DNA of 64,000 nucleotides from Ruditapes philippinarum (taxonomy: Eukaryota), in assembly GCF_026571515.1 (NCBI RefSeq), contig NW_026863766.1, positions 62,001 through 126,000 on the forward strand, written 5' to 3'. The position numbers and the translations under genes are program-made. The notes under the pieces are model-generated. The model did no database searches. It was not told where the DNA came from and saw only the letters and a list, made by a program, of their open reading frames with translations. Positions 34,001 to 62,400 of the stretch are shown piece by piece; position 1 is the stretch's first letter, and each line of letters begins with the position of its first letter.

Positions 34001-37000
34001 GCACCTTTTTTCGTGCATTTCCAACTGCAGAATCACGAGCACGCATTTAAAGCCCGGGCCCGAGTTTTTCCGCGTTCTTCTATAGATATAAATGCACAAG
34101 TATATAGGTACATTTGCACTATACTAACATAAAAAGTAAATGTCAAAATTGGTATTATCGCGTTCCCTATCAGTATTAAGCATTCTTGTGTCATGCTTTT
34201 ACGTGCTAGTGCGATATCGTTTGACAGTTATTTTTGATGATAAAATTACCGGGGCCGTCATTACATAAAGCTATTTTATATTGAGCCCCGAGTTATGCTT
34301 ATTAAAAAAAATCTACCCGTCAATGCATTTTTTCTTCTCCGTTAGAGTATACCTGTGTGCGCAGTTCTTATGCAAGACTTTTGAGATATTTGTACATCCT
34401 TACCAAACTTGTTGAAAATTAAACGAAATAACTCCAGATATAGTTCCGAAATAAAAGAAAATGTTTGCTACTACAGACGAAAAAAATGTTGCTATTCAAA
34501 TCACTAACATAAAAATATCATGCTTTATAATTGATCAGTTTCGCCAGTAACATTACAATTTTGACACATAATATTGTTGTATACAGGTCGACCTCGACCA
34601 GATGGAAGACGGGTTTTTCTGTCGTCACTTGTAGTCAGGCCATTAAATGTTTTGGATCATACTCGTAACGCGGTAGCACCGCCATATCAGAGAAAAAGGC
34701 CGAAATTGGTAAGATTTATTAAACGCCATCAAATGGTTTACTCAGATTGATGTAAACATAGAAATATAGTGTTGTTATCGATCAAATGAAGCCGTTTAGA
34801 CTTTAAACTTAAAGTACAAAAATTATATTATTAAACATTTGAAATACAGTAGCGTAAATAATTTCTTTTTTGAAAATTTCATTTGATCAAAAGAAATATA
34901 TCGTTGTACTTTTTTTTTCATTATTTGCGTTTGTGTAACAAGGAGTGTCTCCATCATATCAATTTAACAATGAGAATGTAAGTATAAACATATTTTATCA
35001 GTTTACATGCCTGTTACATGTGGGGTTCCCCAGGGCAGCATCCTGGGTCCTCTTTTATTTTGTGCTATGTAAATGACATGAGAATTAGTATAGATCAAGA
35101 ATGTAAACTTATTCTATATGCCGATGACAGTGCAATTCTTTTGCTCACAAAAATCCAAGTATTATTTCTCAAAAACTTGGACAAACACTAGAGTCTTGTT
35201 CATCTTGGCTTGTAGATAACAAATTGTCACTTCATCTAGGAAAGACTGAATGTCTTATGTTTGGTTCCAAACGTAAACTGAAACAAGTTAAAGAGTTTAA
35301 AATTGTTTGTAATGGACATACTATTGAATCCACAAAATCTGTTAAATATCTAGGTTTAAATATTGATGATTCTTTGTCAGGTGAATCTATTATTAATTGT
35401 ATTCTTACAAAGGTGAATTCACGTCTTAAGATTTTGTATAGGCAAGCAAATGCTTTAGATTTTAGGACTACAAAATATTTATGCTCAGCACTATTACAAT
35501 GTCACCTTGATTATGCATGTTCTTCTTGGTACCTGAGCCTGAACAAGTGTTTTAGAAATAAGCTTCAAATTTGTCAAAATAAAATTGTTAGATTTATACA
35601 CGGTATGAGACCTAGAGATAGTGTCAATAATGATATTCTTGCTAATATGTCTTTACTAAATGTAGAAAACAGAAATAAGCAATTACATCTTAATCATGTT
35701 TTTAAAATTGTTAATAACCAGTGCCCTTCATATATGATAGAAAAGTCTATACCTGTTAGAGACATTCATTCTTATTCAACTCGGTCGAATCAGTACAATT
35801 TTAGGGTCCCAAGAAGTTATGGGAAAGATAATGTAACTTTTTTTCAAAAAGCAATTAATGATTGGAATTCCTTGCCAACATGCATAAAAAAATTGATAAG
35901 ATAGGAGATTTCAAAAGCTCAGTGAAGGCCCATTTACTAGAACAGTTAGGTTAGGAAATCATAATTAAATCCACTAGTATGACTAGAAATTGATCTCATT
36001 TTTATTGTTTTCCTTTTAGCAAAGTTAATGGAAATACTAAAGTTTGATATTTTACGTAAATGACATCTTCCAGTTTCCAAAGTTTTGTATTTTCAATGTT
36101 TTTGTGTTTTATATTGTATATTATAGTAATATATCATAGTAAGTATATATCCAAGGACCCCATTGGAAATAAGCCTTCGGGCTTTCATGGGCAATCCGAG
36201 GTTATTGCACACTACTCTATACATGTTTCCACTTACGTCCTCACATTTTATTAAACTAGTAATTTGATATCTAGTCATAGGAAGGAAAGAGATTTAGATT
36301 TTGTTTTTAGTTATAATATTTTATTATTTAATGAGCCTTCTGTGATATCTATGTTTGACAAACTTCCGAAATATTTTATTACAATTGTGTCATCCGTTTT
36401 ATATAAAATGCTTAAGTGTTTGTATTATGTATACATGTATATGTGTTTTAACCTGAATAAATATCTATCTATCTAATATCTAACAATTGAATCAAAGAAA
36501 AAGACATTAATAGTTTATCAATTCATTAGACCAGATTAGAGGTTAAATATATTTAAACGCGTATAATAAAATGATTTCTTTTCTGTATTATAAAAAAAAA
36601 ACAATATCGAGATTTTAAATGTTATGCAAACATAATAATCCAAAAATCTTGTAAATATATATTTTTCATTTTAAAGGACCAGTTTGTGATAGTGTTCACT
36701 ATTTTTATTCGTTACAGAGACCACCAGGGATAGGATTACCCGACACATCGGTAATGATGCACGATTTGAACCCGGAAGAAATGATGGCTCCAAGGTATGC
36801 CACACCTTACAACCCACAGGACGATTCAACGTACAACTACAGTTTTCAGACAACGCTTTAAATGTGATTATTATTGAGGTAAAGTTAACGTGACATTCCA
36901 TTGTGCGTTTATTCATATATATCAAATATTTGTTATGATTTAACTTACTGATGCTGTTGCGTAGCTTTCTTGCTGTTGCATAGGTGACTTCAGTGAAACA

Positions 37001-38800: not shown

Positions 38801-38848
38801 TAATTATAAATTCAAGGAAAAATTCAGTAACTCTACCAAATTCAAAAC

Positions 38849-39275
38849 CACAGGGACTTAGCACAGTGTTGGGATAGTGTAAAAAAGTAATTCTAAAAAA
38901 AAATATATACCTTATATATAATATATAGACAAGGGGTTGAACTCGCCAAATCGGCCGATTGTCACTAGTCCAGTACATGTCAAAATTACAAAGTCATTTT
39001 TACGTAAATCATATAAAGCTTTATATCAAATTGCAGGTAAATGACATCACTAGACGTTGACAATAACATTATTGTCCCCACTTAAACCGTTTTTGAACAA
39101 CAAACCGATATTTCAGATGGAAAATCGTATTTTTGCTAGGTCGGACACGACCGTGTAACCAGTCCCGACTCAATTTTCTACGTGTAAAAACGCAATTCCA
39201 AACAACGACAGTGTATCATCCCGCAATAAATCGATAAAACACATTCAAAGAAACAACTTACCGCTAAATATTGAT
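38849..39275 (+). repeat. Left TIR (~427 bp)
   Basis: Reverse complement of 48821-49250 with about 11 differences by manual comparison. Confidence 0.95.
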
Positions 39276-39529
39276 TTTCAAAATGTTTTATAACAGCTGA
39301 AAACAACTAATTTCTTGTACGTAAAAATGAAAGTTGTAATCCGAGGGTAATCCGCATCCAGTGGTTATCACGTGACCGATTTGCAACGGATAATTTCATT
39401 GGTTGATTTCTGGTTCCCTGTCCTGCAAGGTAGGTTTCTACGAAGCTGCAATAGAAAAATGGTATAAGTATCAGATAAATGTAAATGTAAACAAATGTAC
39501 ATTGCTGGTTTACGAAAACGTAAATAAAA

Positions 39530-41248
39530 TTGTCTTTAAACCAAAAACAAAGGGATGCTTTAAGCATTGCAAGTGCTGGACACACCCTTCTTTTATTAGG
39601 ATCGGCTGGGACGGGTAAAAGCCATCCTATTACTGAAATTTGTAAGGAATTGAATGAAAAAGGTAAACAAGTGAAACTGACATGCAGCACGGGCATAGCA
39701 TGTGCAGTGTACCCCACCCATTTAAAACCAATGACAATACACAAATTCACTGGGATAGATGATGGAAGGCATGATCCGAATGAAATTGTGTCAGTATTGA
39801 AAAACAATGCCAAGTGTGACAAGATTATTGATGCAATTATGACAACAGATGTATTAATAGTAGATGAATGTTCTATGATAAGTAAACGTACATTCGAGTC
39901 CATAAAAAAGGTCTGTCAAATTAAAAATCCATGTAAAATATTTGGAGGAATTCAAATTATATTCAGTGGTGACTTTTTTCAGCTCCCACCTGTACCGAAC
40001 AAAAGGTACAATGACGATGGCACATATTGTTTCTTAAGTGAGTTCTTTCAAACTTGTTTCTCTCATACAGTAACATTAACTCAAAATGTGCGGCAGGATG
40101 AGGAACTTTTTGTTAAAGTTATATCTGATATATATCAAGGCAATTTAACTGAATGTGTCATAGAATTTATGAACAGTGTCAATAAATCTTTACCGGGTGG
40201 CAGCCTTAAATTATTTTCAACCAATTTATTAGTGGATACGTACAATCATCAGTGTTTACTGAATTCTCCTGGAGACTTGTTTGAATTCAAAGCAACATAC
40301 AATGGGAATGCAGCAGAACTGAAATCTTTGACAGTGCCTAAAACATTATGGTTGAAGCTTGAATGTCCAGTGATTTTGCTGCGAAATTTAAGTGACACAC
40401 TTGTGAATGGGTTGAGAGGAATATTGAAGTATGCTACTGAGACAAAACTGGCAGTGTACTTTCCCAGTTTACAAAAGACACAAACATTGCATAAAGAGTC
40501 ATTTACAGGTAAAACTAATATTTCATGTCAGAGCCTTTTCTGTTTTAATATTTAAATCAGTAATAACATATGTTTAAAACACATACATGCTAGTCTAAAG
40601 TAATTAGTAATTGGTTTGTGCACATACATGTTTTTTTCAAAAAAGTAAAAAATGTTGTTATTTTTATTTTCATTGAACAGTGTTTGATCCAAGGACAAAT
40701 TCAGATATTGCAAGCAGAATGCAGTTTCCTGTAAAACCAGCATTTGCATTAACAATTCATAAAGCACAGGGGATGACATTGCCTTGGTAAATATACATGT
40801 AGTTCATAAAAATATTTTCCTAAATGTATTTTACTTCCAAACAGTACTGTCTGTATACATTAGTAACTGTTACTATCTTATATAATTGAACTCAATATTT
40901 AAATTTTTATTAGTAATAAAAAACAATAATAAGTCATTTGAAATAGACAATGGAAATATTGCATCTTCCTCATGTAAAGTAAAATAGTGAGATTAATATA
41001 ACTAAGAGCATGGTTTTCTATTTATTACATACAAAATACATATTTTTCAGGCTTGAAGCGGACTGCAATGATATATTTAAGACAGGTCAGCTAGGGGTTG
41101 CGATTTCTAGGGTTAAGTCTTCAAAGGGGTTGCGTGTAATCAATTTTCACCCGAGGTACATATTTAGCCCACCTGCTGCTATCAAACAGATTTCGGATAT
41201 GAAAAGCAATGGAATGATTGAAGACTTTAGCTGTTGTAGAATGATAAG
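39530..41248 (+). CDS. PIF1-family (SF1B) DNA helicase, exons 1-3, transposon-borne
   Basis: Exons 39530-40508, 40681-40786, 41051-41248, GT-AG and in phase. Motifs: GSAGTGKS, STGIA, TIHKF, IVDECSMI, FGGIQIIFSGDFFQLPPV, LTQNVRQ, PVILLRNL..LVNGLRG, RMQFPV..AFALTIHKAQGMTL, GQLGVAISRV..GL. The start reads aaaatTGTCT (ATG apparently broken by an extra T). Confidence 0.93.
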
Positions 41249-42169
41249 GTGATAATGTTTTCAAGTTAATAAGAATCACAACCAATCCAAGCAATGAAAG
41301 AATTGTTTCTTCCTAATGTTATGATACATATTTAGCTTGATTATTTAATGGAAAGTACTTTTGTCTTACTCACCTTAGTGTCATCACTGGCAAAACACTT
41401 GCTCAACCACTGGAGTTGTGCTTATTTAACTTCCAGCAATACCATTTTTTCTAGATGACATTTGTTGTCCAAAATCTAGTATTCTTGCATGGATTATTAC
41501 TGAATAATTCATTTGAGAACTCCTTGATTTAACTTTTTGTTACTGTTCACTTTTACAATGTAGTAATGTTATTCTGGATCTTCACACTTATTGATTCCAG
41601 TATGTTAAATGTTGAGTACACTAATTAATTTCTATGTTGCTTTTATTTAACTGTCCAGCACCGAGAAAAGTGCAGCCTGCTGTCCCAAGACGGGTTTTAG
41701 TTTAAATTTGTTTTCATTGCTCTCGAAGGATCTCCTCTTTTCCAGAGAGTATGGGGGTGTCATAAGGCCTTGTTAAAATTTCTTTGTGGACCTATTAATC
41801 AATCAATTATTTCTTGTCTTTAATTTCCTTAAGTATCATTTTTGTGATTATCCTGTCTGTGCTCTGCCTTGCACCCTGTCCTGTTTTGTTTGGGGTCCTC
41901 CAGGGCTCCTTGTTGCTGGGTTGTTTGGGGGTTGAACTAATTGAACGCCGCCTTTCCATGTTGATCTTGTTTAATTATCATATTTCAGCAGGATCAGTAT
42001 CCAAAATGTTAGTGTCACTTTTACATTATCTCTCATAAACATACTCAAATCAAACTGTCTGCTTTTTATGATTATAGTTTTGTTGTTTTCATTGCTTCCG
42101 TGGGATCATCTCTATTCCAGATTTTTATGAAACTTCACAAATTGTCCTAGATGTCATATTTATATTTAA

Positions 42170-45100
42170 TTACAGTCGGATGACCTTTACATCACTTGAA
42201 GTACAGCTTATTGATGGCCTTTTTCGTAAAGGCTGGTTTAAATTTAAATGGCATGGTTCATATTTGACTCTTGCATTAGTGGCAGCATTTGATTTTTTGA
42301 GACCATGTTTTGGCCTACAAGAATACTATTTATTGCTCGCTGATACTGTAGTGCACTAGGATTTGAATTTGCTCCATGATAAGTGGATCTCTGCTGGTTG
42401 AAAACATTCTCGATAACATCAGAGTTGACCAGTCCTGGAGTGATATACATTATAGATGATTTATTTAGCACTGCTCTGCAAAGTGCAATAAAAACCCAAA
42501 ATACATGACTGTACATCTTCTGCGCATTGTTGAGATAAGAGTTTTTTCCTTTTTTTTTTTCTGAAATTTCCGTGCTATTCATAACTAAATTGTCCCACTT
42601 GGAAAAACCATTCAGCAACAGCATGTAAAGTTCCAAGTCTGTTATCATCTAACACTTTAACAGGTCTCATATCACGAAAAATATCAATTAATTTTGATGT
42701 ATTTTCAAGCAGTTCTATAACTCCATTTAATACTTCACCTTTTTGACCGAGATTCTTTTGATACAATTTCATTGAATGCAACATTTCAGAATTTAACACA
42801 TCTTCTGCTAAACGATTTCGCATTTTCAATTGTGAATCAAGATGAAAATGTTCTCTAGATAATTTTTTATGAGTTTGTAGAGCATTTTGCTGGTCCCAGT
42901 TGAAAAAGTCAATAAACATTTGCCACTGGATAGTGTAAGAACTTGGTAAAGTTAGAATTCTTGTACTTTTTGGATGAATTCCACTTTTAAGAATGTTGTT
43001 TCTCAGTTTTTTTACCACATGTAAAAAGTCCATTAAAAATATTATGTCATTTGATGTGCAAGGACTTCTTGCTATATAACTATGTGACTTATCTCCCAAG
43101 CACATGTGCATTAATGAACGGTTAGCTTGAGCCCCATCCATACAGGTATAAAGAACTGTAAATCCTGCTGATCTGAATAAGTAGACTGCTTTCCAGAAAA
43201 TACTAAATAGCTCAGATGCCTGTACACAGTTGGTTATAAAATATGCCAATGGAAAACTAAAACCAATTCCAAGGAAAAGTAATTGGAGTGCATATTTGCC
43301 TAATTTCTTTTCTTTAGACCCTTGTTTTAAAGCATGGCAGGTGTCTCCCTCCTTCCCATAATCAGTAAAACCAGATATTTCAACAACATCACCATATTTA
43401 TCAATCTGAATATCAGTTTGAATGGCCATTTCATCAAATATGACACCCCCATATCTCTCACCCTCTGGTATATTTTGCCTGTTTGCCTCAGCATACATCC
43501 ATTGGAAAACAACATCTTCAAATCCTGGTTTTTGCTTTATAGCATTTTTATATAATATTAGCAGTGATTGTGATGGTAGTACTAATAACTTGCTTGAATA
43601 TAAGAGGCCATAGCAATGAGGACTTCTGTTATACATTTGCATGCATACACCAATAAATTTCTTTGACCATCTGCGACCTTTTGGGTGTCTGCCAACATTT
43701 TTGGCTTGTTCAACAAGTAATTCTATCATATTTTCATCTGCTCGTGGAAAAAGATTCCTCACTTGCTTGATTAGGGACTCAGGACCAGGAGCATGTGGTT
43801 CAGGCTGGTTTTCTTTATTGTCAGACTGAGAAAAGGTCATTTTCTGACAGGTTCTACAAACAAATGTATGGCTATTTAAGGAAATTACCTTCTCACACAT
43901 TACAGACCTCATTGATCTGACAGCTGTATTATCAGGTCTTTTCCACAAGTCTAGAGTTATGGTATCGGCTTACATTTATGGACTTGGTAATTTCTAGGCC
44001 GCAGCAAAGTTGAATCTTGTCAACAATGGAAAAAACTACTTTTATACCCTTTTCACTTGCATGAAATGTTCCATCAATATATGCTTTGGATAAATTGACT
44101 TTTTTCCCTGCAATTTCAAGTTCCCACATGCCATTCATATGTAAAGTTATTGATTTTGTTACACCATTACCATAACTTAAGTAGCCACTTTGTATTTCAC
44201 AAATAATCTCTTCAGGGCTTATCTTCTTTATATAATAATTGTCTGGTTGACATTTAGTAATACATGTAGTTGTGCATCTTAAATCAGATACAGAACATGT
44301 ATCAATAGGGTCAATGCAAAGACCTCTGTAATATGTCTTGAGTTGTGTGCCAACCTTTTTTCTTACATTTTTAACACCTTGAATTAAAGCTTTCAAATGT
44401 TCCACAAATATCATTGAGCCAGGTATTGAAGAGCCTTTTCCAGATTCTAGACATTCAAACTTGAAAGTGTCCAAGAGCATATTTATGTCTACTTCTCCAT
44501 CTGGGACAGGTGTCAGTCTTGACAGAATCCTATCAAATAATTGAGTAAAAAATTAGATGTTGATTTTTTTATACACCATAACAAAATACAGTTGAACCTG
44601 TGATAGCGTTCATTTGAATTAAACACAATTATATGGGAATACATGTAGTAACATTAAGTTTTGCATTTCTGTATTTCAAATTGTTATGTATAGTAGCAAT
44701 TTTAAAGGCCCATCATGCTCCGGAAATGCTTTTTTAATTCTCACAAAGTTTTTCATTTCTTGCGTCCTATTATAGTTTATAAAATGTCATTCATTGGCCA
44801 ATATGCATATAAATCAAAATACTACTTTATTTAAATGTAAATACTTTTATGACAATATGGGTGATAAGGCTTCTCAAAAACCATTAATATCAATCTTATG
44901 AAACACCTGATTTCTCTTTCTATATATTTAGTAAAAACTCTTTCATTTCCAAAGCATTATGTGCCTTTAAACTTTTTTTTAATGAATGTAGGAATTGACC
45001 CACAGATTAACTTCATCAACTGCATTACACAGGTTTAACTGTTTGACCATGTTTAAAGTGGAGAAAAATTGTTTATATCAAAAATAGCATACCCTGTAAA

Positions 45101-48100
45101 GTAACTATAAGAAATACATTAGAAATTCATATTTTTTTCCTATCTGAATTCAGTATAAATGGTTGTACATTGTAGTTTAACTGGATTTAAACCAGTTTGT
45201 AAATAATTTCTATATTGTCATACATTTATATATTAACAATCTTCATCTGAAAAGAGCATTTTATATTCCTGAAACCTTTATTTATTCAGAAGACATAAAT
45301 AGAATTTTAAAAAAATTATACATGTATATTTGTCATATTTTAGTTAAGCATGTCACAATATGAAATAACTTTCACCTGTATAAAATATAGCTATACACAA
45401 CATGCCTCCAGATGTTTCATGCAAATACAGTGCATTTTTAACTTAAGATATGATATGGTAGATGTTATTTCCTTAGCTATTCGCCAAAAGTTATTTTCTT
45501 TAAAGGCACATTATGCTGTAGAAATGCTTTTCATTTTAAGAATTTTTTTGTGTGTGTAATATTAGGTCCAAAAAATAACTAACATTTTTTTTTGCTGTTT
45601 TGAACCACCTTTTGCTGTTTTGGCATAGTTATTATTAATTTTTTTTGTATGGAAGTCAAAATGCACTGTGTTTACATTTTACTACTTTTATTACATTCAA
45701 ATAATGATTTTGTTAAATATAGGCAGATTATGTATAGCTTTATACACCTTTAATAGATTAATAATACATAGAAATCATAATCAGATAGTTAAAAAAAGCA
45801 TGCATAATTACATGCATTGATGCTCTGGTAATCTAAACCATGAATTCAAATTCAGCTGATATTGTCAATTTGGCTGACAAAAATTGAATCAAACTATGTA
45901 TACATTATTTCTGGGGATAAATCTTCATGTTATATAAGCTATGGTTCAGTTAAAAAGATCAGTAGTATTTCTCAAAAATGATATGGATTTGAAATATTAC
46001 AAAATTTTTGGTACCATTTTTAATGACAAATGCAGCATATTTGATATTTCACAAATATAATTACCAGAGCAACAATACATAGATATTGATACAATTCAAT
46101 TATTAGTTCTTTATTAATTACAATATCTTATGTTCATTATATATTCATTCCAGTAATGAAACAGAGCAACTGCTAATACCAACACCAGTGAAAGCAACAA
46201 GCACAAGTATTCTCTTAGACACTACTAGCGAAGAAATGGAACTTGAGGATGACTTCAATGATATACTTGCTTCAATTGATAGTGATGAACAAGAGGTATT
46301 ACAGTTTGAAATTCACAATAGATTCATCATGAAGAATATGCTTGCAGAAATTGCTTTCAAAAAACCATTTGGAACTTCTCAGCCAAAATGTAATCTTATA
46401 TATTATCACAACTTCATCCTGAAAACCTAAAACTAGTGACTTTTGTAAAAAGATTATTCTTAACATGTTCAAATATTTTCAAAGAATTAAATATGGACAG
46501 TTTTCAACCTGGTACTTCTATACCAGAGAGTGTATTGGCAATTTTTTTTAAAAAAATGTATGAATATACACTTGATGTCCAATATACAATGGATTGTCTC
46601 AGCTTATTTAATATGGGAACAGATAATTTGTTTGAAGAAGAACACAAAATGGTTTGTTACATGATTGTGGAATATATTAGAGACTTTATACTAACACAAA
46701 GACTTGAATTACTACAAACACAAGGAATGAATGTTAATAGAAGGTTTGTTACAGATGCTTCCCGGTCAAGAATTCGCTATGTTGCAGGTTACTGTGTAGC
46801 AAAGCTAAGAAAAAAATATGTGCAAGTATTACAATCTAATATGTTTACTAAATCTAAAACATCACAAACAAAATTTAAAGAAGCTAAAAATACTCTTCTT
46901 ATTCTTAACTCTTTCAAAGAAGAAGAACATTATTTACATCAGGTGACATCTGAACCAGACTCCCTCATAGACACTGAAAGAAAACAAAATGTAAAACGTG
47001 GTCTTACCAATGTAACGGATAGTATGTTCAAATTTTTCTTGACTTTAACTGATTTGTGTTTGGCAAAGCTAATAAATGAAAATTTGATAAAATATGGCAA
47101 ATCAATGTTTAACAATTGTTTGGAGCATGTGCTTAGTGAAAAAGGTTTATTTGAACAATTTTCACATATGGTTATTAATAAATTGAAAGAGGAGACAGTA
47201 GAAGAATTTTCTTTAAACCAAGAACATATGATATTAACAGAACTTGTCGACTCTTTGGTACTTACAACTGCCCAGATATGCAGCATATACAATGAAATTA
47301 TTAATAAATATTTTATGGTTTTATTTGCCCAGTTCTGCCGAGATATCAAAGGAGCTTTTCATATTATGAAAACAATGGCTCACAGGAAGCAAATAAAAGT
47401 GTCAAAATCTTCGGAGCATACAAAGCAGAAAAAAAGGCTACTGAAACTTCTACAGAAACAATACAATTAGTGGAGTCAACTACTGAAGTACAACCCACAG
47501 TAACTGTTCAACCCAGTCCAGAGCCTGAACCCCAACCAGGGTCATCAAGTTTGACAAGTGATCTCTGTAAAAAATGTCAAAAGTCAGAAGGAAATCAATG
47601 GATTCTATTTGATTCTTGTAATTATTGGTTTCACAGAAAATGTGCTGGTTTGCATAATGCAAAAAAAATGGAAAAATATTCAAAGGAAGGAACTGAATGG
47701 AACTGTCCCGAATGTGATTGAAAATTGTATTGAAAAAACTCTATAACTTATCCAAATTTTTACATAATATAATAATGCTTACCTATATGAATACATGAAA
47801 TTGTCTCAAAAAAGGTACAAACCCTTGAGAAGTTATTGAAATACCAGCTTACACGCGAAAACTTAAACATTTTTAAGTTGTATAAGTTGCTTAATTATGC
47901 AAAAAAGCAAACCAGAGTTAAGGTTCTTGTACCAATCATTTTAGATAATTACAAGGAAGAAGCATATGAAGTTTCAATCCATTTCCTTCGGAGTCATGGA
48001 GATACCAGCTTATGCCAAAACACAAATCAGTTATAGGACTTTTCAAAATCATGTAACATAATCACAGAGAATAAGTGAAGTTTCAATCCACTCTCTTCAG

Positions 48101-48535
48101 TAGTTATGGAGATACCAGCTTACACGCAAAAACTTACCCAATAATTTCTAAGTCGAAAAAGGGGCATAAATATGCAAAAAAGCAAATCAGAGTTATGGTA
48201 CTGGTATCAATCATGTTAGATAATCACAGCATATGAACTTTCAATCCAATCCTTTTAGTAGCTATGGAGATACCAGCTTATATGAATAAACTTTATCATG
48301 GGGACGCCACTAAATGGGTTCTTTGAATAGTATACCTAAAAAAGGAGTTTCCAACTTTCCACACTGTTATTTATATTGATATAGGCCATATATACATGTA
48401 TATGCATAGAATCCTGCATAGAATCCTTTGAAATGCAATGTAAACAATGGACAATTCTTGTGTAAATTTAATGTGTCAAGTACTTTTAATGTCATTATTT
48501 CCACGGAACATACAATCTTACCAGTTTACAAGCAT
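42170..48535 (-). CDS. P-element/THAP9-type DDE transposase (frameshifted in this sequence), no THAP domain
   Basis: Main exon 44529-42170: GRRWS helix-turn-helix region, IFDEM (D1), CMDG..NR (D2), MDFLHVVKKLRNN (DxxH), KMRNRLAEDVL, NSDVIENVFNQQR (E); ends VKVIRL-TAA. Frameshifts near 43945, 42600-42500 and 42295. Putative first coding exon 48535-48522 (aaaATG CTT GTA AAC TG|gtaag) is phase-compatible with the acceptor at 44529. Confidence is higher for the main exon than for exon 1. Confidence 0.88.
46154..47721 (+). CDS. Putative terminal exon of the helicase gene: acidic linker, helical YVAGY/RGL domain, PHD finger (2 frameshifts)
   Basis: Acceptor ttcattccag|T AAT GAA is phase 2, matching donor AG|gtgat at 41248. 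It covers three consecutive ORF-track pieces (46188, 46436, 47470). PHD pattern CKKC..WILFDSC..WFHRKC..WNCPEC, third Cys replaced by F. Confidence 0.72.
47800..48310. repeat. Internally repetitive element (satellite-bearing MITE-like) inside the P element
   Basis: gataccagctta-type unit at ~47840, 48001, 48110, 48269, with aagtttcaatcca and agagttaaggttcttg subunits recurring. Confidence 0.65.
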
Positions 48536-48820
48536 TTTCGCTATGAATCAGGAACGAATTGTTGAAAAGCTGAAAAAATAAGTTGTTTTCACCAAAATAA
48601 TTACGGACTTTCAAAATTAGCGCTAAAATTCACGTGCCATGGAACCCGAATTCAGCATTGAAATAGATAGCTGAGCTGGGACACAGAATCGTCCAATCAA
48701 AAGGCGTCTTACAACCGGAGCCGAGTATTTATCTCGGACAAGAAACATGTCTTCAGCTGTTTATTTTCACGGAAGAGTGACAAAAAAAACCGAATGTTAC
48801 CTGTAATTGATTGGTTTTGG

Positions 48821-49250
48821 ATCAATATTTTAGCGGTAAGTTGTTTCTTTGAATGTGTTTTATCGATTTATTGCGAGATGATACACTGTCGTTGTTTGGA
48901 ATTGCGTTTTTACACGTAGAAAATTGAGTAGGGACTGGTTACACGGTCGTGTCCGACCTAGCAAAAATACGATTTTCCATCTGAAATATCGGTTTGTTTG
49001 TTCAAAAAACGGTTTAAGTGGGGACAATAATGTTATTGTCAACGTCTAGTGATGTCATTTACCTGCAATTTGATATATAGCTTTATATGATTTACGTAAA
49101 AATGACTGTGTAATTTTGACTTGTACTGGACTAGTGACAATCGGCCGATTTGGCGAGTTCAACCCCTTGTCTATATATTATATATAAGGTATATATATTT
49201 TTTTAGAATTACTTTTTTACACTATCCCAACACTGTGCTGGGTCCCTGTG
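48821..49250 (-). repeat. Right TIR (~430 bp)
   Basis: Reverse complement of 38849-39275. Confidence 0.95.
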
Positions 49251-51018
49251 TTCAAAACATGACTCTAAGAAATTCCGAAAATGATTTTAGATTGATGGTA
49301 GAAAAAATATTGGGGGCATTTAAAGCTTAGTTTGTGACTTGACATCAGAACCATTCTTGAAAGTACACAAATGCATAGAAAACTGGCACTAAACGTTATT
49401 CTCACAAATAAATATAAAGAGTATTTATCAATTTATACAAAAAAAACAACAACATTCTTTTATTTATTTTGTGTTATCATGTTCAGAGACAGATATATAT
49501 TTACATTGACAACTAAGGGCGACAACAAAGATTAGCGGCAATGTCTTAAAGCCGTATTTCCGGCAAAGGTATTCAAGACGTTGCTGCAAATACTTGGTTG
49601 CAGCTCGCCAATAGGCGATAATGGTCCGAAGATATGCATAATTGCCTGAGGGCCTCAGGCCCGAAGAACATTTTGGATACGATTGCCATTATTGCATTAT
49701 GGCGAGCAGCAACCAAGTATTTACCTCTAATTAATAAGTAAAAGTGGTTTCTATTTTATTTCCGACAGATTTTCTTCGGTAGCGTTACATTATATTATAT
49801 AATTGAATAATTAGTAATAATCAAAACTTTCTTTTCAACCAATCTTAAATTTTATAACTTACATTCATAGTATATTCAGAAAATTGTCCACCCTTATTTT
49901 ACTGTTGAATGTTTATTTTACTATGAATTGCTTATAAATATTATCATTAAACCAGTTTCATGCATTCTGCATCCTGTGTTTGTTTATAAAGATATTTGCA
50001 GTTACACATTACACCAGACCAAGAATCAAATGCATTATCAGTTCATATTAATCCAAAATATTACATCAATTTATTTATTATGTTTAAAATCGATTTTAAA
50101 GTCTTTACATGTACCAACTCAAGCAAACCGAGTCTGCAATTTCAATGTAAATTTGCTGTTTTACTGCTTCCGAGGGATAACATTTTTTCCAGAAATTTCT
50201 AAAACGAACAATATTCTCATTTTATAGAGTTCACTCGATGCCCTGAAAAAGCTTTGTATTCAAGAACTTTTGCAAAATGTGTAGCAGGGCTTTATAATCA
50301 ATAAAAACACTGCCTTGATATCATAAAACAATTTAATAGCGGTGTTCTCGGGGGAATTCCATCTAAAATGATTTATTACAAACGCAAAAAGTCTTCCAGT
50401 GTGTTCATTTCAAGGTTAAGCCCATTTTATCGTTTATTAGGCTTAACCAACACGTAAACTTGTGCTAAATGAATAATTTTTATTGAATAAAAGGCAAATG
50501 CCTGTGAGTACATATACATAAACATATAATACAAAGGTTTTATTTTTACAAAATAATCAGTAGCGGTCCAATTCTATATATAAATCGTCATACAAATATG
50601 CAATCGTAAAAAGATATCAATCATCACTGCATGCAATAGAAAATGAAATTTATTTTATCAAGTATGTTAAGTATTATCATGAAAATAGTAAATATCATAC
50701 TCAAGACCTAATCGTATTATTTTGCAAACTATAAGAGGCAATTGGTGAAAACAACAGTATCAATCAATAAAAATGTAAATGCGTTTATGTAAAATGTTCT
50801 CATTTAAGATATTTAATTTGACTTTTGGAGTATTTTCAAACAGTTAGACATCGTCAATAAGATTTATTTTTGCTAATACAACATCATACAGTTTTGAATT
50901 ATTTTTCGTTTTTACCTGCTTAAATCAAAACATGTTAGTAACGTTTAATATATTTTTTAGACATACTAAATACTATGATTTTACTTTTGATTGGATTTGT
51001 ATCCAGATGTTTTTTTTA

Positions 51019-59499: not shown

Positions 59500-62400
59500 T
59501 GTACTCATAAGGTGAGTTTTATCACATTAAAAAATATAAGTAAGTTCAAAGGTCTTCTTATCATTCTCTTACGAAGGTATGCTGTACTTTAAGCAGTCGA
59601 ATTTCTCCATCATTTTACTAGTCACACGAACTCACAATGCGACCAATTTTTCCAACTTCCTCTAGTAAGTTTCCTTTTTTGCACAACATCACAGTACTCG
59701 TATAGTTTTGGCAGTAATCCGTGCTGGATTTTATTGAGTCTGAATCGCTCTCTTAAACTCAAAGGTATTATCCACGGCAATTTTCAGAATCATTCAGTAT
59801 GTGTGTCTTTTCCGACAGTTTTTAGTTGAAATTTTCGACAGGTATGTTTTTCAATCACCACGTACGTCTTCTAAGTCTGGTACCCGGTGTTTGGATTTAT
59901 GTTTAAGAAGTGCCCAGGCCCAAGTGATGTACGAGATAAATCATATTTCTTCGTAAACTAAGGGTCTCGAATTGAACAATGAAGGTTTTCCAATCCTTAT
60001 AGTAGCTTGAAGTTATTTGAATAATTGTAAGAATTTTCGTCCTAATGATTTTTTAGTGCACTTTTAACTACCAACTAACGTTAATAGATCCCCCATCCAG
60101 GGAGCTAATCGACAATGAATTCAATGCCTTACGAAGCTACGATGACTTTACTTCACCAGTTGCACTTAGCGTTTTTCCATATATGTTTATGACTTTGCGT
60201 GGCAAGTTTAACTGAGCAGCGTTATCAGAAACAATCTCGATAGGAGTGTTTCTTTGTCGAAATGAAGTTCTTCTGTACTTAAACTTCTGAAATCAACTTC
60301 CAAATGAATAGCACGTGTTGTCAACACGAAAATAACATATCCAGATTTTTCTATTACCATTTGATGTCTTAAATGTTCAACTAGTCAAGATAATGTAATC
60401 CAATTCGTGAAAAATGCACTTGACTTTTGTACTCTTGAACTGCGGAAGTGAGCCATTACAGGCATTTTGTATGGGCCTCCATCGTAGCAGCGCGCACATT
60501 AAATTATTTAATGGCTGGCCTTTGCCCGTTGAACGACCGCGAGTTATCCAATATGTTTGTCTTGTTTTTGGATGGCGTATGTGATATTCCATCACGCATT
60601 CACTCTTTATGTACCTTTGAATCACTAGTCTCATGTAACCTTTTTCTTTGTGAGGATAGAAGAATAGGTTGTCTTTCTCCTTCTGATATAGCAAGAGTGT
60701 CCCGCTAAACGCCCAGTTAACAAACGCAATAATTCATATTGTTGTCGATAACCAGTCCGAGTTGTCTTTGTAGTCCGGAGGCTTTTTCTTTTGAATATTC
60801 TTATAATCCTTAGATTAATAAATTGTTCTTTTGTACATAAACTATAGCACACATTTTCAGTTTTTTCGTAAGTCGTAGTCACAAGTTAGATATTTTGCAT
60901 CAACTTTTACATTTTGGAGTTTCCTAATGAACTTTGAACACAAGACCTGTAACACGCAAATAATTTTATCAATGTTGAATATCTTTGAATGTCAATTCAC
61001 ATGGTGGGGTAACAATATCATGTTTTGTTTTGCTTTCATTTCTTTCGACATGCAATGAAACACATAGTTCTTTCATCTTTTCTCGCTTTAATTCATGTCA
61101 ATAATATTTGTCGTGATTTGTACCAGTTTCGTTGACTTTCAAAAACACCAAGTGGGACCGTTCCACCAAAAAGAATGTATCCTTTAAATCACTCACTCGA
61201 CGAACCTCGAGTTGCAACATAAGCTGGATTATTTTGTGTCTACATGAGCAAAAATCACACAATTATTGCTTTTGATTTCTTTAACTCTATTTTTCACAAA
61301 TACGGGAAGTTGCCTTTTTACTATTAATCCAGTCTAATGCCTATCTGAGAGTCGGTCCAAAGGTATTCGTGCGATATTTCTATCATTAACTGTGTCTTTC
61401 TCAAATTTCAAACACCTACACCTATTAGCACTGTCATACAGCTCTAGTCTTGGTATATGTCATGTTCTTGACCGGAGCAAGACGTGTTTGGCAAAGATCA
61501 AGTTTGGTTTTAACCATCAGTTGCATTTTCTTGCTGTAAATAGATTGTTGTGGCATAAGCTTTTGACGAAGATTCACAAAAACAAAGCAAATTGTATTTT
61601 ACATATTTGTCCTTGAGAGAACCGATACTCCGGCATATTTGATGTCAGATATCAACCTAACCTGATCGCTGATAAATGACACTTATCGAGCACGATGTTC
61701 GTCTGTTAATCTTTTAATCCTAGTCGAAGCCACTTTCCCACATTTCTTCAAGCAAAATTTTTCCATGAAGAGTGACTGGTGACACAAGACCCATGGGGTC
61801 AAATACTGATGCTATTCCTTTCAGTACGATTCATTTTGTCACTAATGAACGGTTTATATTCGAACTCACCGATTTTACTGACAGAATATTGATTTTATGT
61901 ACCAAACATGTCCTATAACCTTTATTTCAGTTTCAGTGGATCTGTAAACTTCTGGAATAAGACTTACTTTTGTTTACTTTTTCACTACTTGAACTCCACG
62001 CCAGAAGATTCATTTGGGCGTCTTAAAACATACTTTTGCTTCTTTATACTAATCTACAGCTTGTTCATCGCTGGATGCTCCGGTTATAATATTGTCCACA
62101 TAAATGTCATGTTTCATCTGTTCTGATAGTTTAGTGTCATAAGTATTTAAATGAGTCTTAATCGTTGCACTCAGAAGAAAACGGCTTGAAACTATCCCAA
62201 ACGGTACTCTACATCGATGTTGTTTGGAAAAAGTGATGGTCTTTTTGTGTCTTTAATCCAAAGGAATCTGGTTACATCGCGTTCTGAGTCTTGCAGACAA
62301 ACTTGAAAAAATGTGTGCAACTATTGCCACCTTATGTAAACGAAATCTTATAAGTATCCCACACAAGTCCTTGAGTAAAACAGGACCTCGAGAAAGACAC

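Follow-up and report, generated by a model that had tools for sequence, protein, structure and literature searches.

How does a helicase gene of the PIF1 family come to lie inside a cut-and-paste transposon of the P superfamily, and does it belong there? The question is raised by a 10.4-kb element of the clam Ruditapes philippinarum, located at positions 38849-49250 of the window analysed here (a stretch of 64,000 nucleotides, positions 62,001 to 126,000 of contig NW_026863766.1). PIF1 domains are typical of the RepHel proteins of Helitrons, and canonical P elements encode only a THAP-transposase. The original prediction saw in this locus a single unit, bounded by terminal inverted repeats (TIRs) and a target-site duplication (TSD), that contains a P-type transposase together with a spliced PIF1 helicase, and proposed a two-component P lineage. 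The single unit was borne out by the TIRs, the 8-bp TSD, the Pfam matches and the helicase motifs, which all agree. As to the lineage, the possession of its own helicase stood, whereas the number of components did not: there are three genes here, the additional one being open reading frame (ORF) 3 on the plus strand (46154-47721). Members of this lineage carry three co-inherited genes, which encode a transposase core, a PIF1 helicase of ~430 amino acids (aa) and an ORF3 protein of ~510 aa, between long TIRs with CACAGG termini and an 8-bp TSD. The coordinates of the features are collected in Table 1.

The two TIR arms of the window element are 97-98% complementary, and its termini (CACAGGGAC) belong to the CACAGG class of ends. 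In the 1.4-Gb genome at least 44 TIR matches were scored, among 705 candidates. Perfect 8-bp TSDs, all different, were found at six loci, namely at the window copy and at five further copies of the family, and the TSD-bearing copies include miniature inverted-repeat transposable elements (MITEs) of 1.1 kb as well as deletion or rearranged derivatives of 6-8 kb. Examples of the latter are an internally deleted copy of 6,070 bp (C11443) and a rearranged copy of 7,819 bp (C11405), each with its own perfect 8-bp TSD; C2131 is a collinear full-length sister copy, the right end of which lies outside the compared sequence. The MITE-like derivatives (C15064:33469-34591, C13983:10520-11647 and many others) consist of both TIRs and a spacer of ~290 bp, add up to ~1.1 kb, have their own 8-bp TSDs, show 88-93% TIR identity to the window element and greatly outnumber the coding copies. 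The window element is a DNA transposon of the cut-and-paste type, from the P superfamily; this copy was inserted recently and has since been damaged. A 24-nt subterminal motif (GTGTAAAAA.G.AATTC.AAA.AA) is present in two copies per TIR, ~30 and ~335 nt from the tip, and these copies are candidates for transposase-binding sites.

In the transposase gene the ORF 42575-43948(-) matched TNP-like_RNaseH_N (PF21787, E 8.6e-17), and TNP-like_GBD (PF21788) was detected in the window copy with 26.1 bits, the cut-off being 24.8, as well as in the metagenome locus L080 and in database homologs. A profile built from 21 transposases of the clade matched the Drosophila P transposase (6p5a_A, E 5.4e-8) with the catalytic segments DEM, DG..N and D..E..F all aligned, whereas a phmmer search of the PDB sequences with one single transposase gave no match. 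The RNase H catalytic core, the GTP-binding insertion, the 8-bp TSD and the TIRs assign the element to the P superfamily. The profile match to the P protein ends ~44 positions past the catalytic E, at P residue 564, and these transposases are therefore without a C-terminal domain (CTD) of their own. No THAP domain (PF05485) was found on the N-terminal ORFs or in 56 homologs. The N-terminus showed weak matches to RFX winged-helix domains (RFX5, E 0.044; RFX1, E 0.25; profile positions 3-75), and judged from this sequence likeness an RFX-like N-terminus may have replaced the THAP domain. Four invariant cysteines were also noted in the N-terminal part (43932-44480(-)), further along than the RFX-like stretch.

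The helicase gene consists of three exons. The ORF 39530-40555(+) matched PIF1 (PF05970, E 2.6e-26) and Pif1_2B (PF21530), exons 2 and 3 were found on translating 40380-41300, and helicase motifs I-VI, the Pif1 signature and the 2B domain are all present. The window exons have GT/AG borders, and their structure equals that of the best relative in the databases, a three-exon NCBI model of 432 aa (P0084), which represents a sister copy in R. philippinarum; it was this database protein, rather than a model spliced from the window exons, that served as the full-length helicase in the searches. P0084 aligned over its full length with the human and yeast PIF1 cores (E ~3e-49; residues 2-410 with human PIF1 core 6hph, E 2.7e-49), whereas the alignment with the Helitron Helraiser was partial and weaker (E 6.6e-14). 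Pfam searches of the window ORFs gave no match to a Rep or Helitron_like_N domain, and the 432 aa of P0084 comprise the helicase only. In a quick-search tree of 44 helicases, those associated with the elements and stand-alone molluscan PIF1-like proteins were on one side of a branch (Shimodaira-Hasegawa-like approximate likelihood ratio test, SH-aLRT, 92), and seven Helitron-like helicases of the R. philippinarum genome formed a clade of their own (SH-aLRT 99). Where a reading frame was broken, only its pieces, with X between them, went into the trees.

These results bear on the possibility that the locus is a local composite, in which a Helitron or another helicase-bearing element is nested in an ordinary P element. 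Such a composite would fit the usual occurrence of PIF1 domains in Helitrons and the presence, in this genome, of Helitron-like helicases within ORFs of 930-2261 aa. However, the helicase starts 256 bp inward of the left TIR (~255 bp in the original prediction), a distance too short for a Rep, to which there was no match either. Moreover, the same layout recurs within the TIR/TSD pairs of two other, diverged elements, the sister copies are collinear, and the helicase clade is apart from the Helitron-like one. The earlier view that the helicase is not a nested insertion is thus upheld, and a composite confined to this locus deserves hardly any credence.

Helicase, transposase and ORF3 were found together on more than 25 R. 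philippinarum contigs, with 25-58% protein identity to the window proteins and usually in the order helicase(+), transposase(-), ORF3(+); the genome was searched for ORF3 with the 344-aa ORF 46436-47470. A diverged but complete element (C9393:205276-216100, L038+L037) has TIRs of ~720 nt that are 98% identical, the terminus CACAGGTTATC, the 8-bp TSD TAAATATC and open frames for the transposase (807 aa), ORF3 (511 aa) and helicase exon 1 (291 aa). Its helicase starts only 28 bp inward of the TIR, and the promoter must therefore sit in the TIR. Among metagenome contigs, L074 carries a complete element (terminus CACAGGTGCTAG, TSD TCGGTAAT), and the element on L080 is cut off within TIRs of at least 260 nt. 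A scan of the metagenome contigs with the transposase profile yielded 80 loci, with the helicase on 19, ORF3 on 10 and all three genes on 7 of them, and in every case where transposase and helicase were both present they were on opposite strands and convergent. The same scan with a single protein, P0033, gave no match. Homologs of all three proteins were found in the bivalves Dreissena, Mya, Mercenaria, Mytilus, Pinctada, Tegillarca, Saccostrea, Argopecten and Sinanodonta, and relatives of the helicase also in one nemertean and one abalone.

The only relatives with two genes are more distant ones, in which the helicase is fused to ORF3. In L040 (C7622) the ORF3 domain (hhalign probability 99.5%, E 5e-23) comes after the PIF1 core within a single ORF of 838 aa, and just downstream of that ORF lies the PHD finger. 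Fusion ORFs were also present on the metagenome contigs L115 (808 aa; hhalign 97%, E 5.6e-11), L080 (852 aa), L113 (769 aa) and L078 (791 aa), and a P-type transposase gene adjoins each of these four. The order of genes is different in L078 (JYMV01048599.1): the 791-aa ORF, made up of the C-terminal part of the helicase, an ORF3-like region and a PHD finger, is upstream of the transposase and divergent from it, and a second helicase fragment is located downstream of the transposase.

The ORF3 homologs are 510-560 aa long and consist of an acidic N-terminus, a helical middle part with the invariant motifs RIRYVAGYC, LTNVTD and KTMAHRKQIKV, and a C-terminal PHD finger. The PHD finger (PF00628, Cys4-His-Cys3) was detected at 47470-47721 (E 3.9e-7) and in 9 of 12 homologs, and its best solved relatives in a profile search of the PDB sequences were the PHD fingers of Pygopus. 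It was the only part of ORF3 recognized by sequence, in Pfam up to E 10 as well as in the profile search of the PDB sequences; a precomputed match to Pfam PF27108 exists on ORF3 homologs. When the AlphaFold model of ORF3 was compared exhaustively by structure with 48,161 chains, 6p5a_B came first (Z 8.6); this chain is the CTD (residues 617-734) of the transposase of the Drosophila P element. With a second model, restricted to the domain (predicted local distance difference test, pLDDT, 84; predicted template modelling score, pTM, 0.82), 6p5a_B was again at the top (Z 8.9, root mean square deviation 3.0, 118/118 residues), and the next-best chain reached Z 6.4.

It has to be considered whether this likeness could have arisen by chance, with the three-gene lineage being real and ORF3 being an unrelated helical chromatin-targeting factor. 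Several points weigh in that direction and against a CTD in ORF3. With helical models a Z below ~13 can be due to chance, the likeness comes from structure prediction alone (Z ~9 for a helical domain, 15% identity), ORF3 had no sequence-level match to PF12596 or 6p5a, and Foldseek against the PDB gave no match; a search of the ESM Atlas with ORF3 likewise gave no usable match. On the other hand, the P CTD ranked first in two separate models, over the whole domain and 2.5 Z units above the next chain, and the domain that it resembles is exactly the one without which the partner transposase was found. Taking both sides into account, we regard a chance resemblance as unlikely, though it is the most serious of the alternatives.

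When helicase and transposase trees of the same 14 elements were compared, 8 of the 11 splits were common to both, and in 5000 shuffles of the labels the number never exceeded 4. Between families the synonymous divergence (dS) was saturated and the non-synonymous divergence (dN) was 0.2-0.6; because of the saturation of synonymous sites, dN/dS is kept as a qualitative statement only. With these data, those tests proposed in the original prediction that could be run came out in its favour: both genes occur together repeatedly inside TIR pairs of diverged families, the trees are congruent, the helicases form a clade apart from the Helitron-like ones of this genome, and between families dS is saturated while dN is moderate.

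The same observations speak to the possibility that the helicase is a passenger, that is, a PIF1 of host or Helitron origin that was captured once and has no role in transposition. Capture of host genes by transposons does occur, the helicase is a minimal PIF1 core that is nearest to cellular PIF1, and its role in transposition is deduced rather than observed. Yet open frames and all motifs have been retained in families with 36-50% protein identity, and as a neutral passenger is expected to be lost often, such long retention counts against this explanation. So do the co-divergence of the helicase with the transposase, the saturated dS combined with moderate dN, the fusion to the CTD-like/PHD protein in several lineages and the same orientation of the genes on unrelated metagenome contigs. 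A mere passenger is in our judgement improbable, more so than a chance resemblance of the ORF3 fold.

Alignment with four sister copies (97-98% identical) showed that the window copy is damaged in all three genes. The transposase has private 1-bp insertions near 42604 and 43957, which distribute it over three frames; ORF3 is broken by an extra 2 bp near 46397 and an extra 1 bp near 47430; and the helicase begins with ATA AAA TTG, compared with ATG AAA ATG in the sister copies. Introns as the cause of the frame changes in the transposase and in ORF3 were considered and rejected, the changes being private 1-2 bp indels. Presumed transcript contigs of two public runs were compared over 40300-46299. 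Over the transposase they contained neither of the two 1-bp insertions, and they may stem from other copies. The junction between helicase exons 2 and 3 is held by one contig of the X1 run, which has a loose end before 41063. Judged by the GT..AG joints 42007->46154 and 44544->46154, ORF3 transcripts splice over the whole antisense transposase gene. The first of the two upstream exons is in frame with ORF3 and has an ATG at 41958. No splice from helicase exon 3 to ORF3 was seen in the contigs of the two runs. Positions 41940-41973, which overlap this upstream exon, are a 34-nt piece of a very abundant transcribed repeat; the piece is covered more than 1000-fold in RNA runs, and the reads diverge from it on both sides.

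The absence of a CTD from the transposase, the CTD-like fold of ORF3 and the helicase-ORF3 fusions together suggest that the transposase is split and that a helicase is thereby brought to the transpososome. We consider a three-gene P lineage with a split transposase the best explanation of the data and a likely one, the split itself and the recruitment of the helicase into the transpososome being the parts that we infer. The P CTD is all-helical, is attached through a flexible linker to the RNase H domain and touches the target DNA as well as the single-stranded transposon end, which is looped out; 3' single-stranded extensions of 17 nt remain after P cleavage (PMC7776569). In the clam lineage the CTD module would act in trans, carried by ORF3 or by the helicase fusion, and would place a 5'-3' PIF1 helicase and a reader of histone tails at the transposon ends. 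Opening the termini, or holding them single-stranded, could be the task of the helicase, which could deal in the same way with structures formed by the long TIRs. Alternatively, it could drive long-tract repair synthesis over the excision gap and thereby restore the donor copy; according to a preprint, Drosophila PIF1 promotes processive DNA synthesis in double-strand gap repair (bioRxiv 10.1101/554550). The PHD finger might bias the choice of target or donor chromatin. The fullest form of this proposal, a P lineage that has moved its CTD to a PHD-finger protein or fused it to a PIF1 helicase, has built a helicase and a histone reader into its cut-and-paste transpososome and has spread through bivalves and other marine animals, is put forward tentatively, with confidence a little short of even.

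Further points weigh against the split-transposase explanation. The tie of helicase and ORF3 to transposition comes by reasoning. The helicase tree was drawn without the host's own PIF1. Some transposase matches had no scored helicase neighbour, and the search counts are lower bounds. The window genes are damaged, and some of the indels, which fall within short homopolymers, may have arisen in the assembly. Finally, the two runs with the spliced joints are presumed to be RNA.

Table 1. Positions of the features of the P-superfamily element in the window
Feature	Position	Strand	Basis
Left TSD, TTCAAAAC	38841-38848	.	same 8 bp as 49251-49258
Left TIR, ~420 nt, terminus CACAGGGAC	38849-39268	+	inverted-repeat pairing with right arm
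24-nt motif copies (candidate transposase-binding sites)	38877-38900, 39182-39205; mirror copies 48892-48915, 49199-49222		inverted-repeat pairs
PIF1 helicase exon 1 (Walker A, Walker B, Pif1 signature, 2B domain)	39524-40508	+	Pfam PF05970, PF21530; tblastn of P0084
PIF1 helicase exon 2 (motifs IV/V, TIHKAQG)	40681-40786	+	translation; tblastn of P0084
PIF1 helicase exon 3 (motif VI) and stop	41051-41252	+	translation; tblastn of P0084
ORF3 upstream exon, donor 42007 -> 46154	41944-42007	+	GT..AG joint in contigs of two runs
P/THAP9-type transposase core (N-terminal region, RNase H, GTP-binding insertion)	42244-44486	-	Pfam; collinear with 807-aa ORF L037:2314-4737
ORF3 alternative upstream exon, donor 44544 -> 46154	44422-44544	+	GT..AG joint in one run (X2)
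Intergenic element segment with MITE-like pieces	44702-45943	.	missing by deletion from two sister copies
ORF3 coding exon (acidic N-terminus, P-CTD-like helical domain, PHD finger)	46154-47721	+	Pfam, homologs, structure models
PHD finger of ORF3	47566-47715	+	Pfam PF00628
Right TIR	48829-49250	-	inverted-repeat pairing with left arm
Right TSD, TTCAAAAC	49251-49258	.	same 8 bp as left side

Some further features of the window may be mentioned. In the intergenic segment the first 100 bases and bases 900-1000 match many short genomic loci, which is suggestive of a MITE of ~200 nt, itself holding an insert, inside the segment. The possibility that the whole segment is a nested transposon was dismissed, since the sequence belongs to the element: related copies have it, and two have lost it by deletion. 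Just beyond the right end of the element there is an inverted repeat (49588-49722) with arms of 37 nt that are 86% complementary and 61 nt apart. Upstream of the element, a 226-aa ORF (35224-35904, +) had no Pfam match.

Several known systems share some of these characteristics. Galileo-type elements of the P superfamily combine, as the clam lineage does, a P-type transposase with TIRs of hundreds of bases. Galileo is not known to encode more than a transposase, and no helicase or PHD gene has been described for it. Another transposon that carries a helicase is AcademH, in which the helicase belongs to a family different from that of the PIF1-type enzyme of the clam lineage. AcademH is a helicase-encoding lineage of Academ that moves by DDE cut-and-paste (Kojima 2020, cited in PMC10045372); on that account it is the nearest precedent for a DDE cut-and-paste transposon with a helicase, and it differs from the clam lineage in the transposase superfamily and in the TSD (9-10 bp as opposed to 8 bp). 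Like the RepHel proteins of Helitrons and Helentrons, the clam element has a superfamily 1B helicase of the PIF1 family in what would be its transposition machinery. In Helitrons, however, an HUH Rep is fused to the helicase, there are no TIRs and no TSD, and insertion occurs between A and T, whereas the clam element has 420-nt TIRs, 8-bp TSDs, no Rep domain and a helicase of a separate clade. PIF/Harbinger elements are also of the cut-and-paste type and have a second element-encoded protein that brings the transposase to DNA, but this protein is a Myb/SANT DNA-binding factor, and these elements have no helicase and no detached transposase domain.

With the Drosophila P element and vertebrate THAP9 the clam lineage has in common the RNase H-like core, the GTP-binding insertion, the three catalytic segments, the 8-bp TSD, the TIRs and the internally deleted derivatives (PMC7776569). 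It differs from them in that no THAP domain was detected, in the length of the TIRs (120-720 nt, compared with 13-31 bp in P), in the presence of two extra genes and in the location of the CTD, which is not on the transposase and which, by fold, is on the PHD-finger protein or the helicase. In the full-text literature that could be searched, neither a PIF1 helicase nor a detached CTD turned up in the description of any P-type element. As far as searchable papers go, this agrees with the original prediction, to which no such P subgroup was known; Repbase and Dfam were outside the scope of this literature search, and an entry for the family, unaccompanied by a paper, may exist there.

In textbooks, P elements serve as a model of cut-and-paste transposition, and they are commonly held to require only one element-encoded protein. 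If the explanation proposed here is true, the P superfamily can recruit DNA-unwinding and chromatin-reading parts of its own, and there is a helicase-assisted form of DDE transposition. Because intact-looking elements exist, with three open frames and TIRs that are 98% identical, the idea is directly testable, and the lineage offers a natural system for asking what the role of the P CTD is and how gaps left by excision, or long structured ends, are dealt with. The abundant PIF1-like genes of bivalves have been reported to be enriched in haplotype-specific regions (PMC9646362; bioRxiv 10.1101/2020.09.15.298695). If the proposal is correct, the lineage would explain many of the mollusc 'PIF1-like' genes that are now taken for Helitrons, and this would change the annotation of bivalve genomes.

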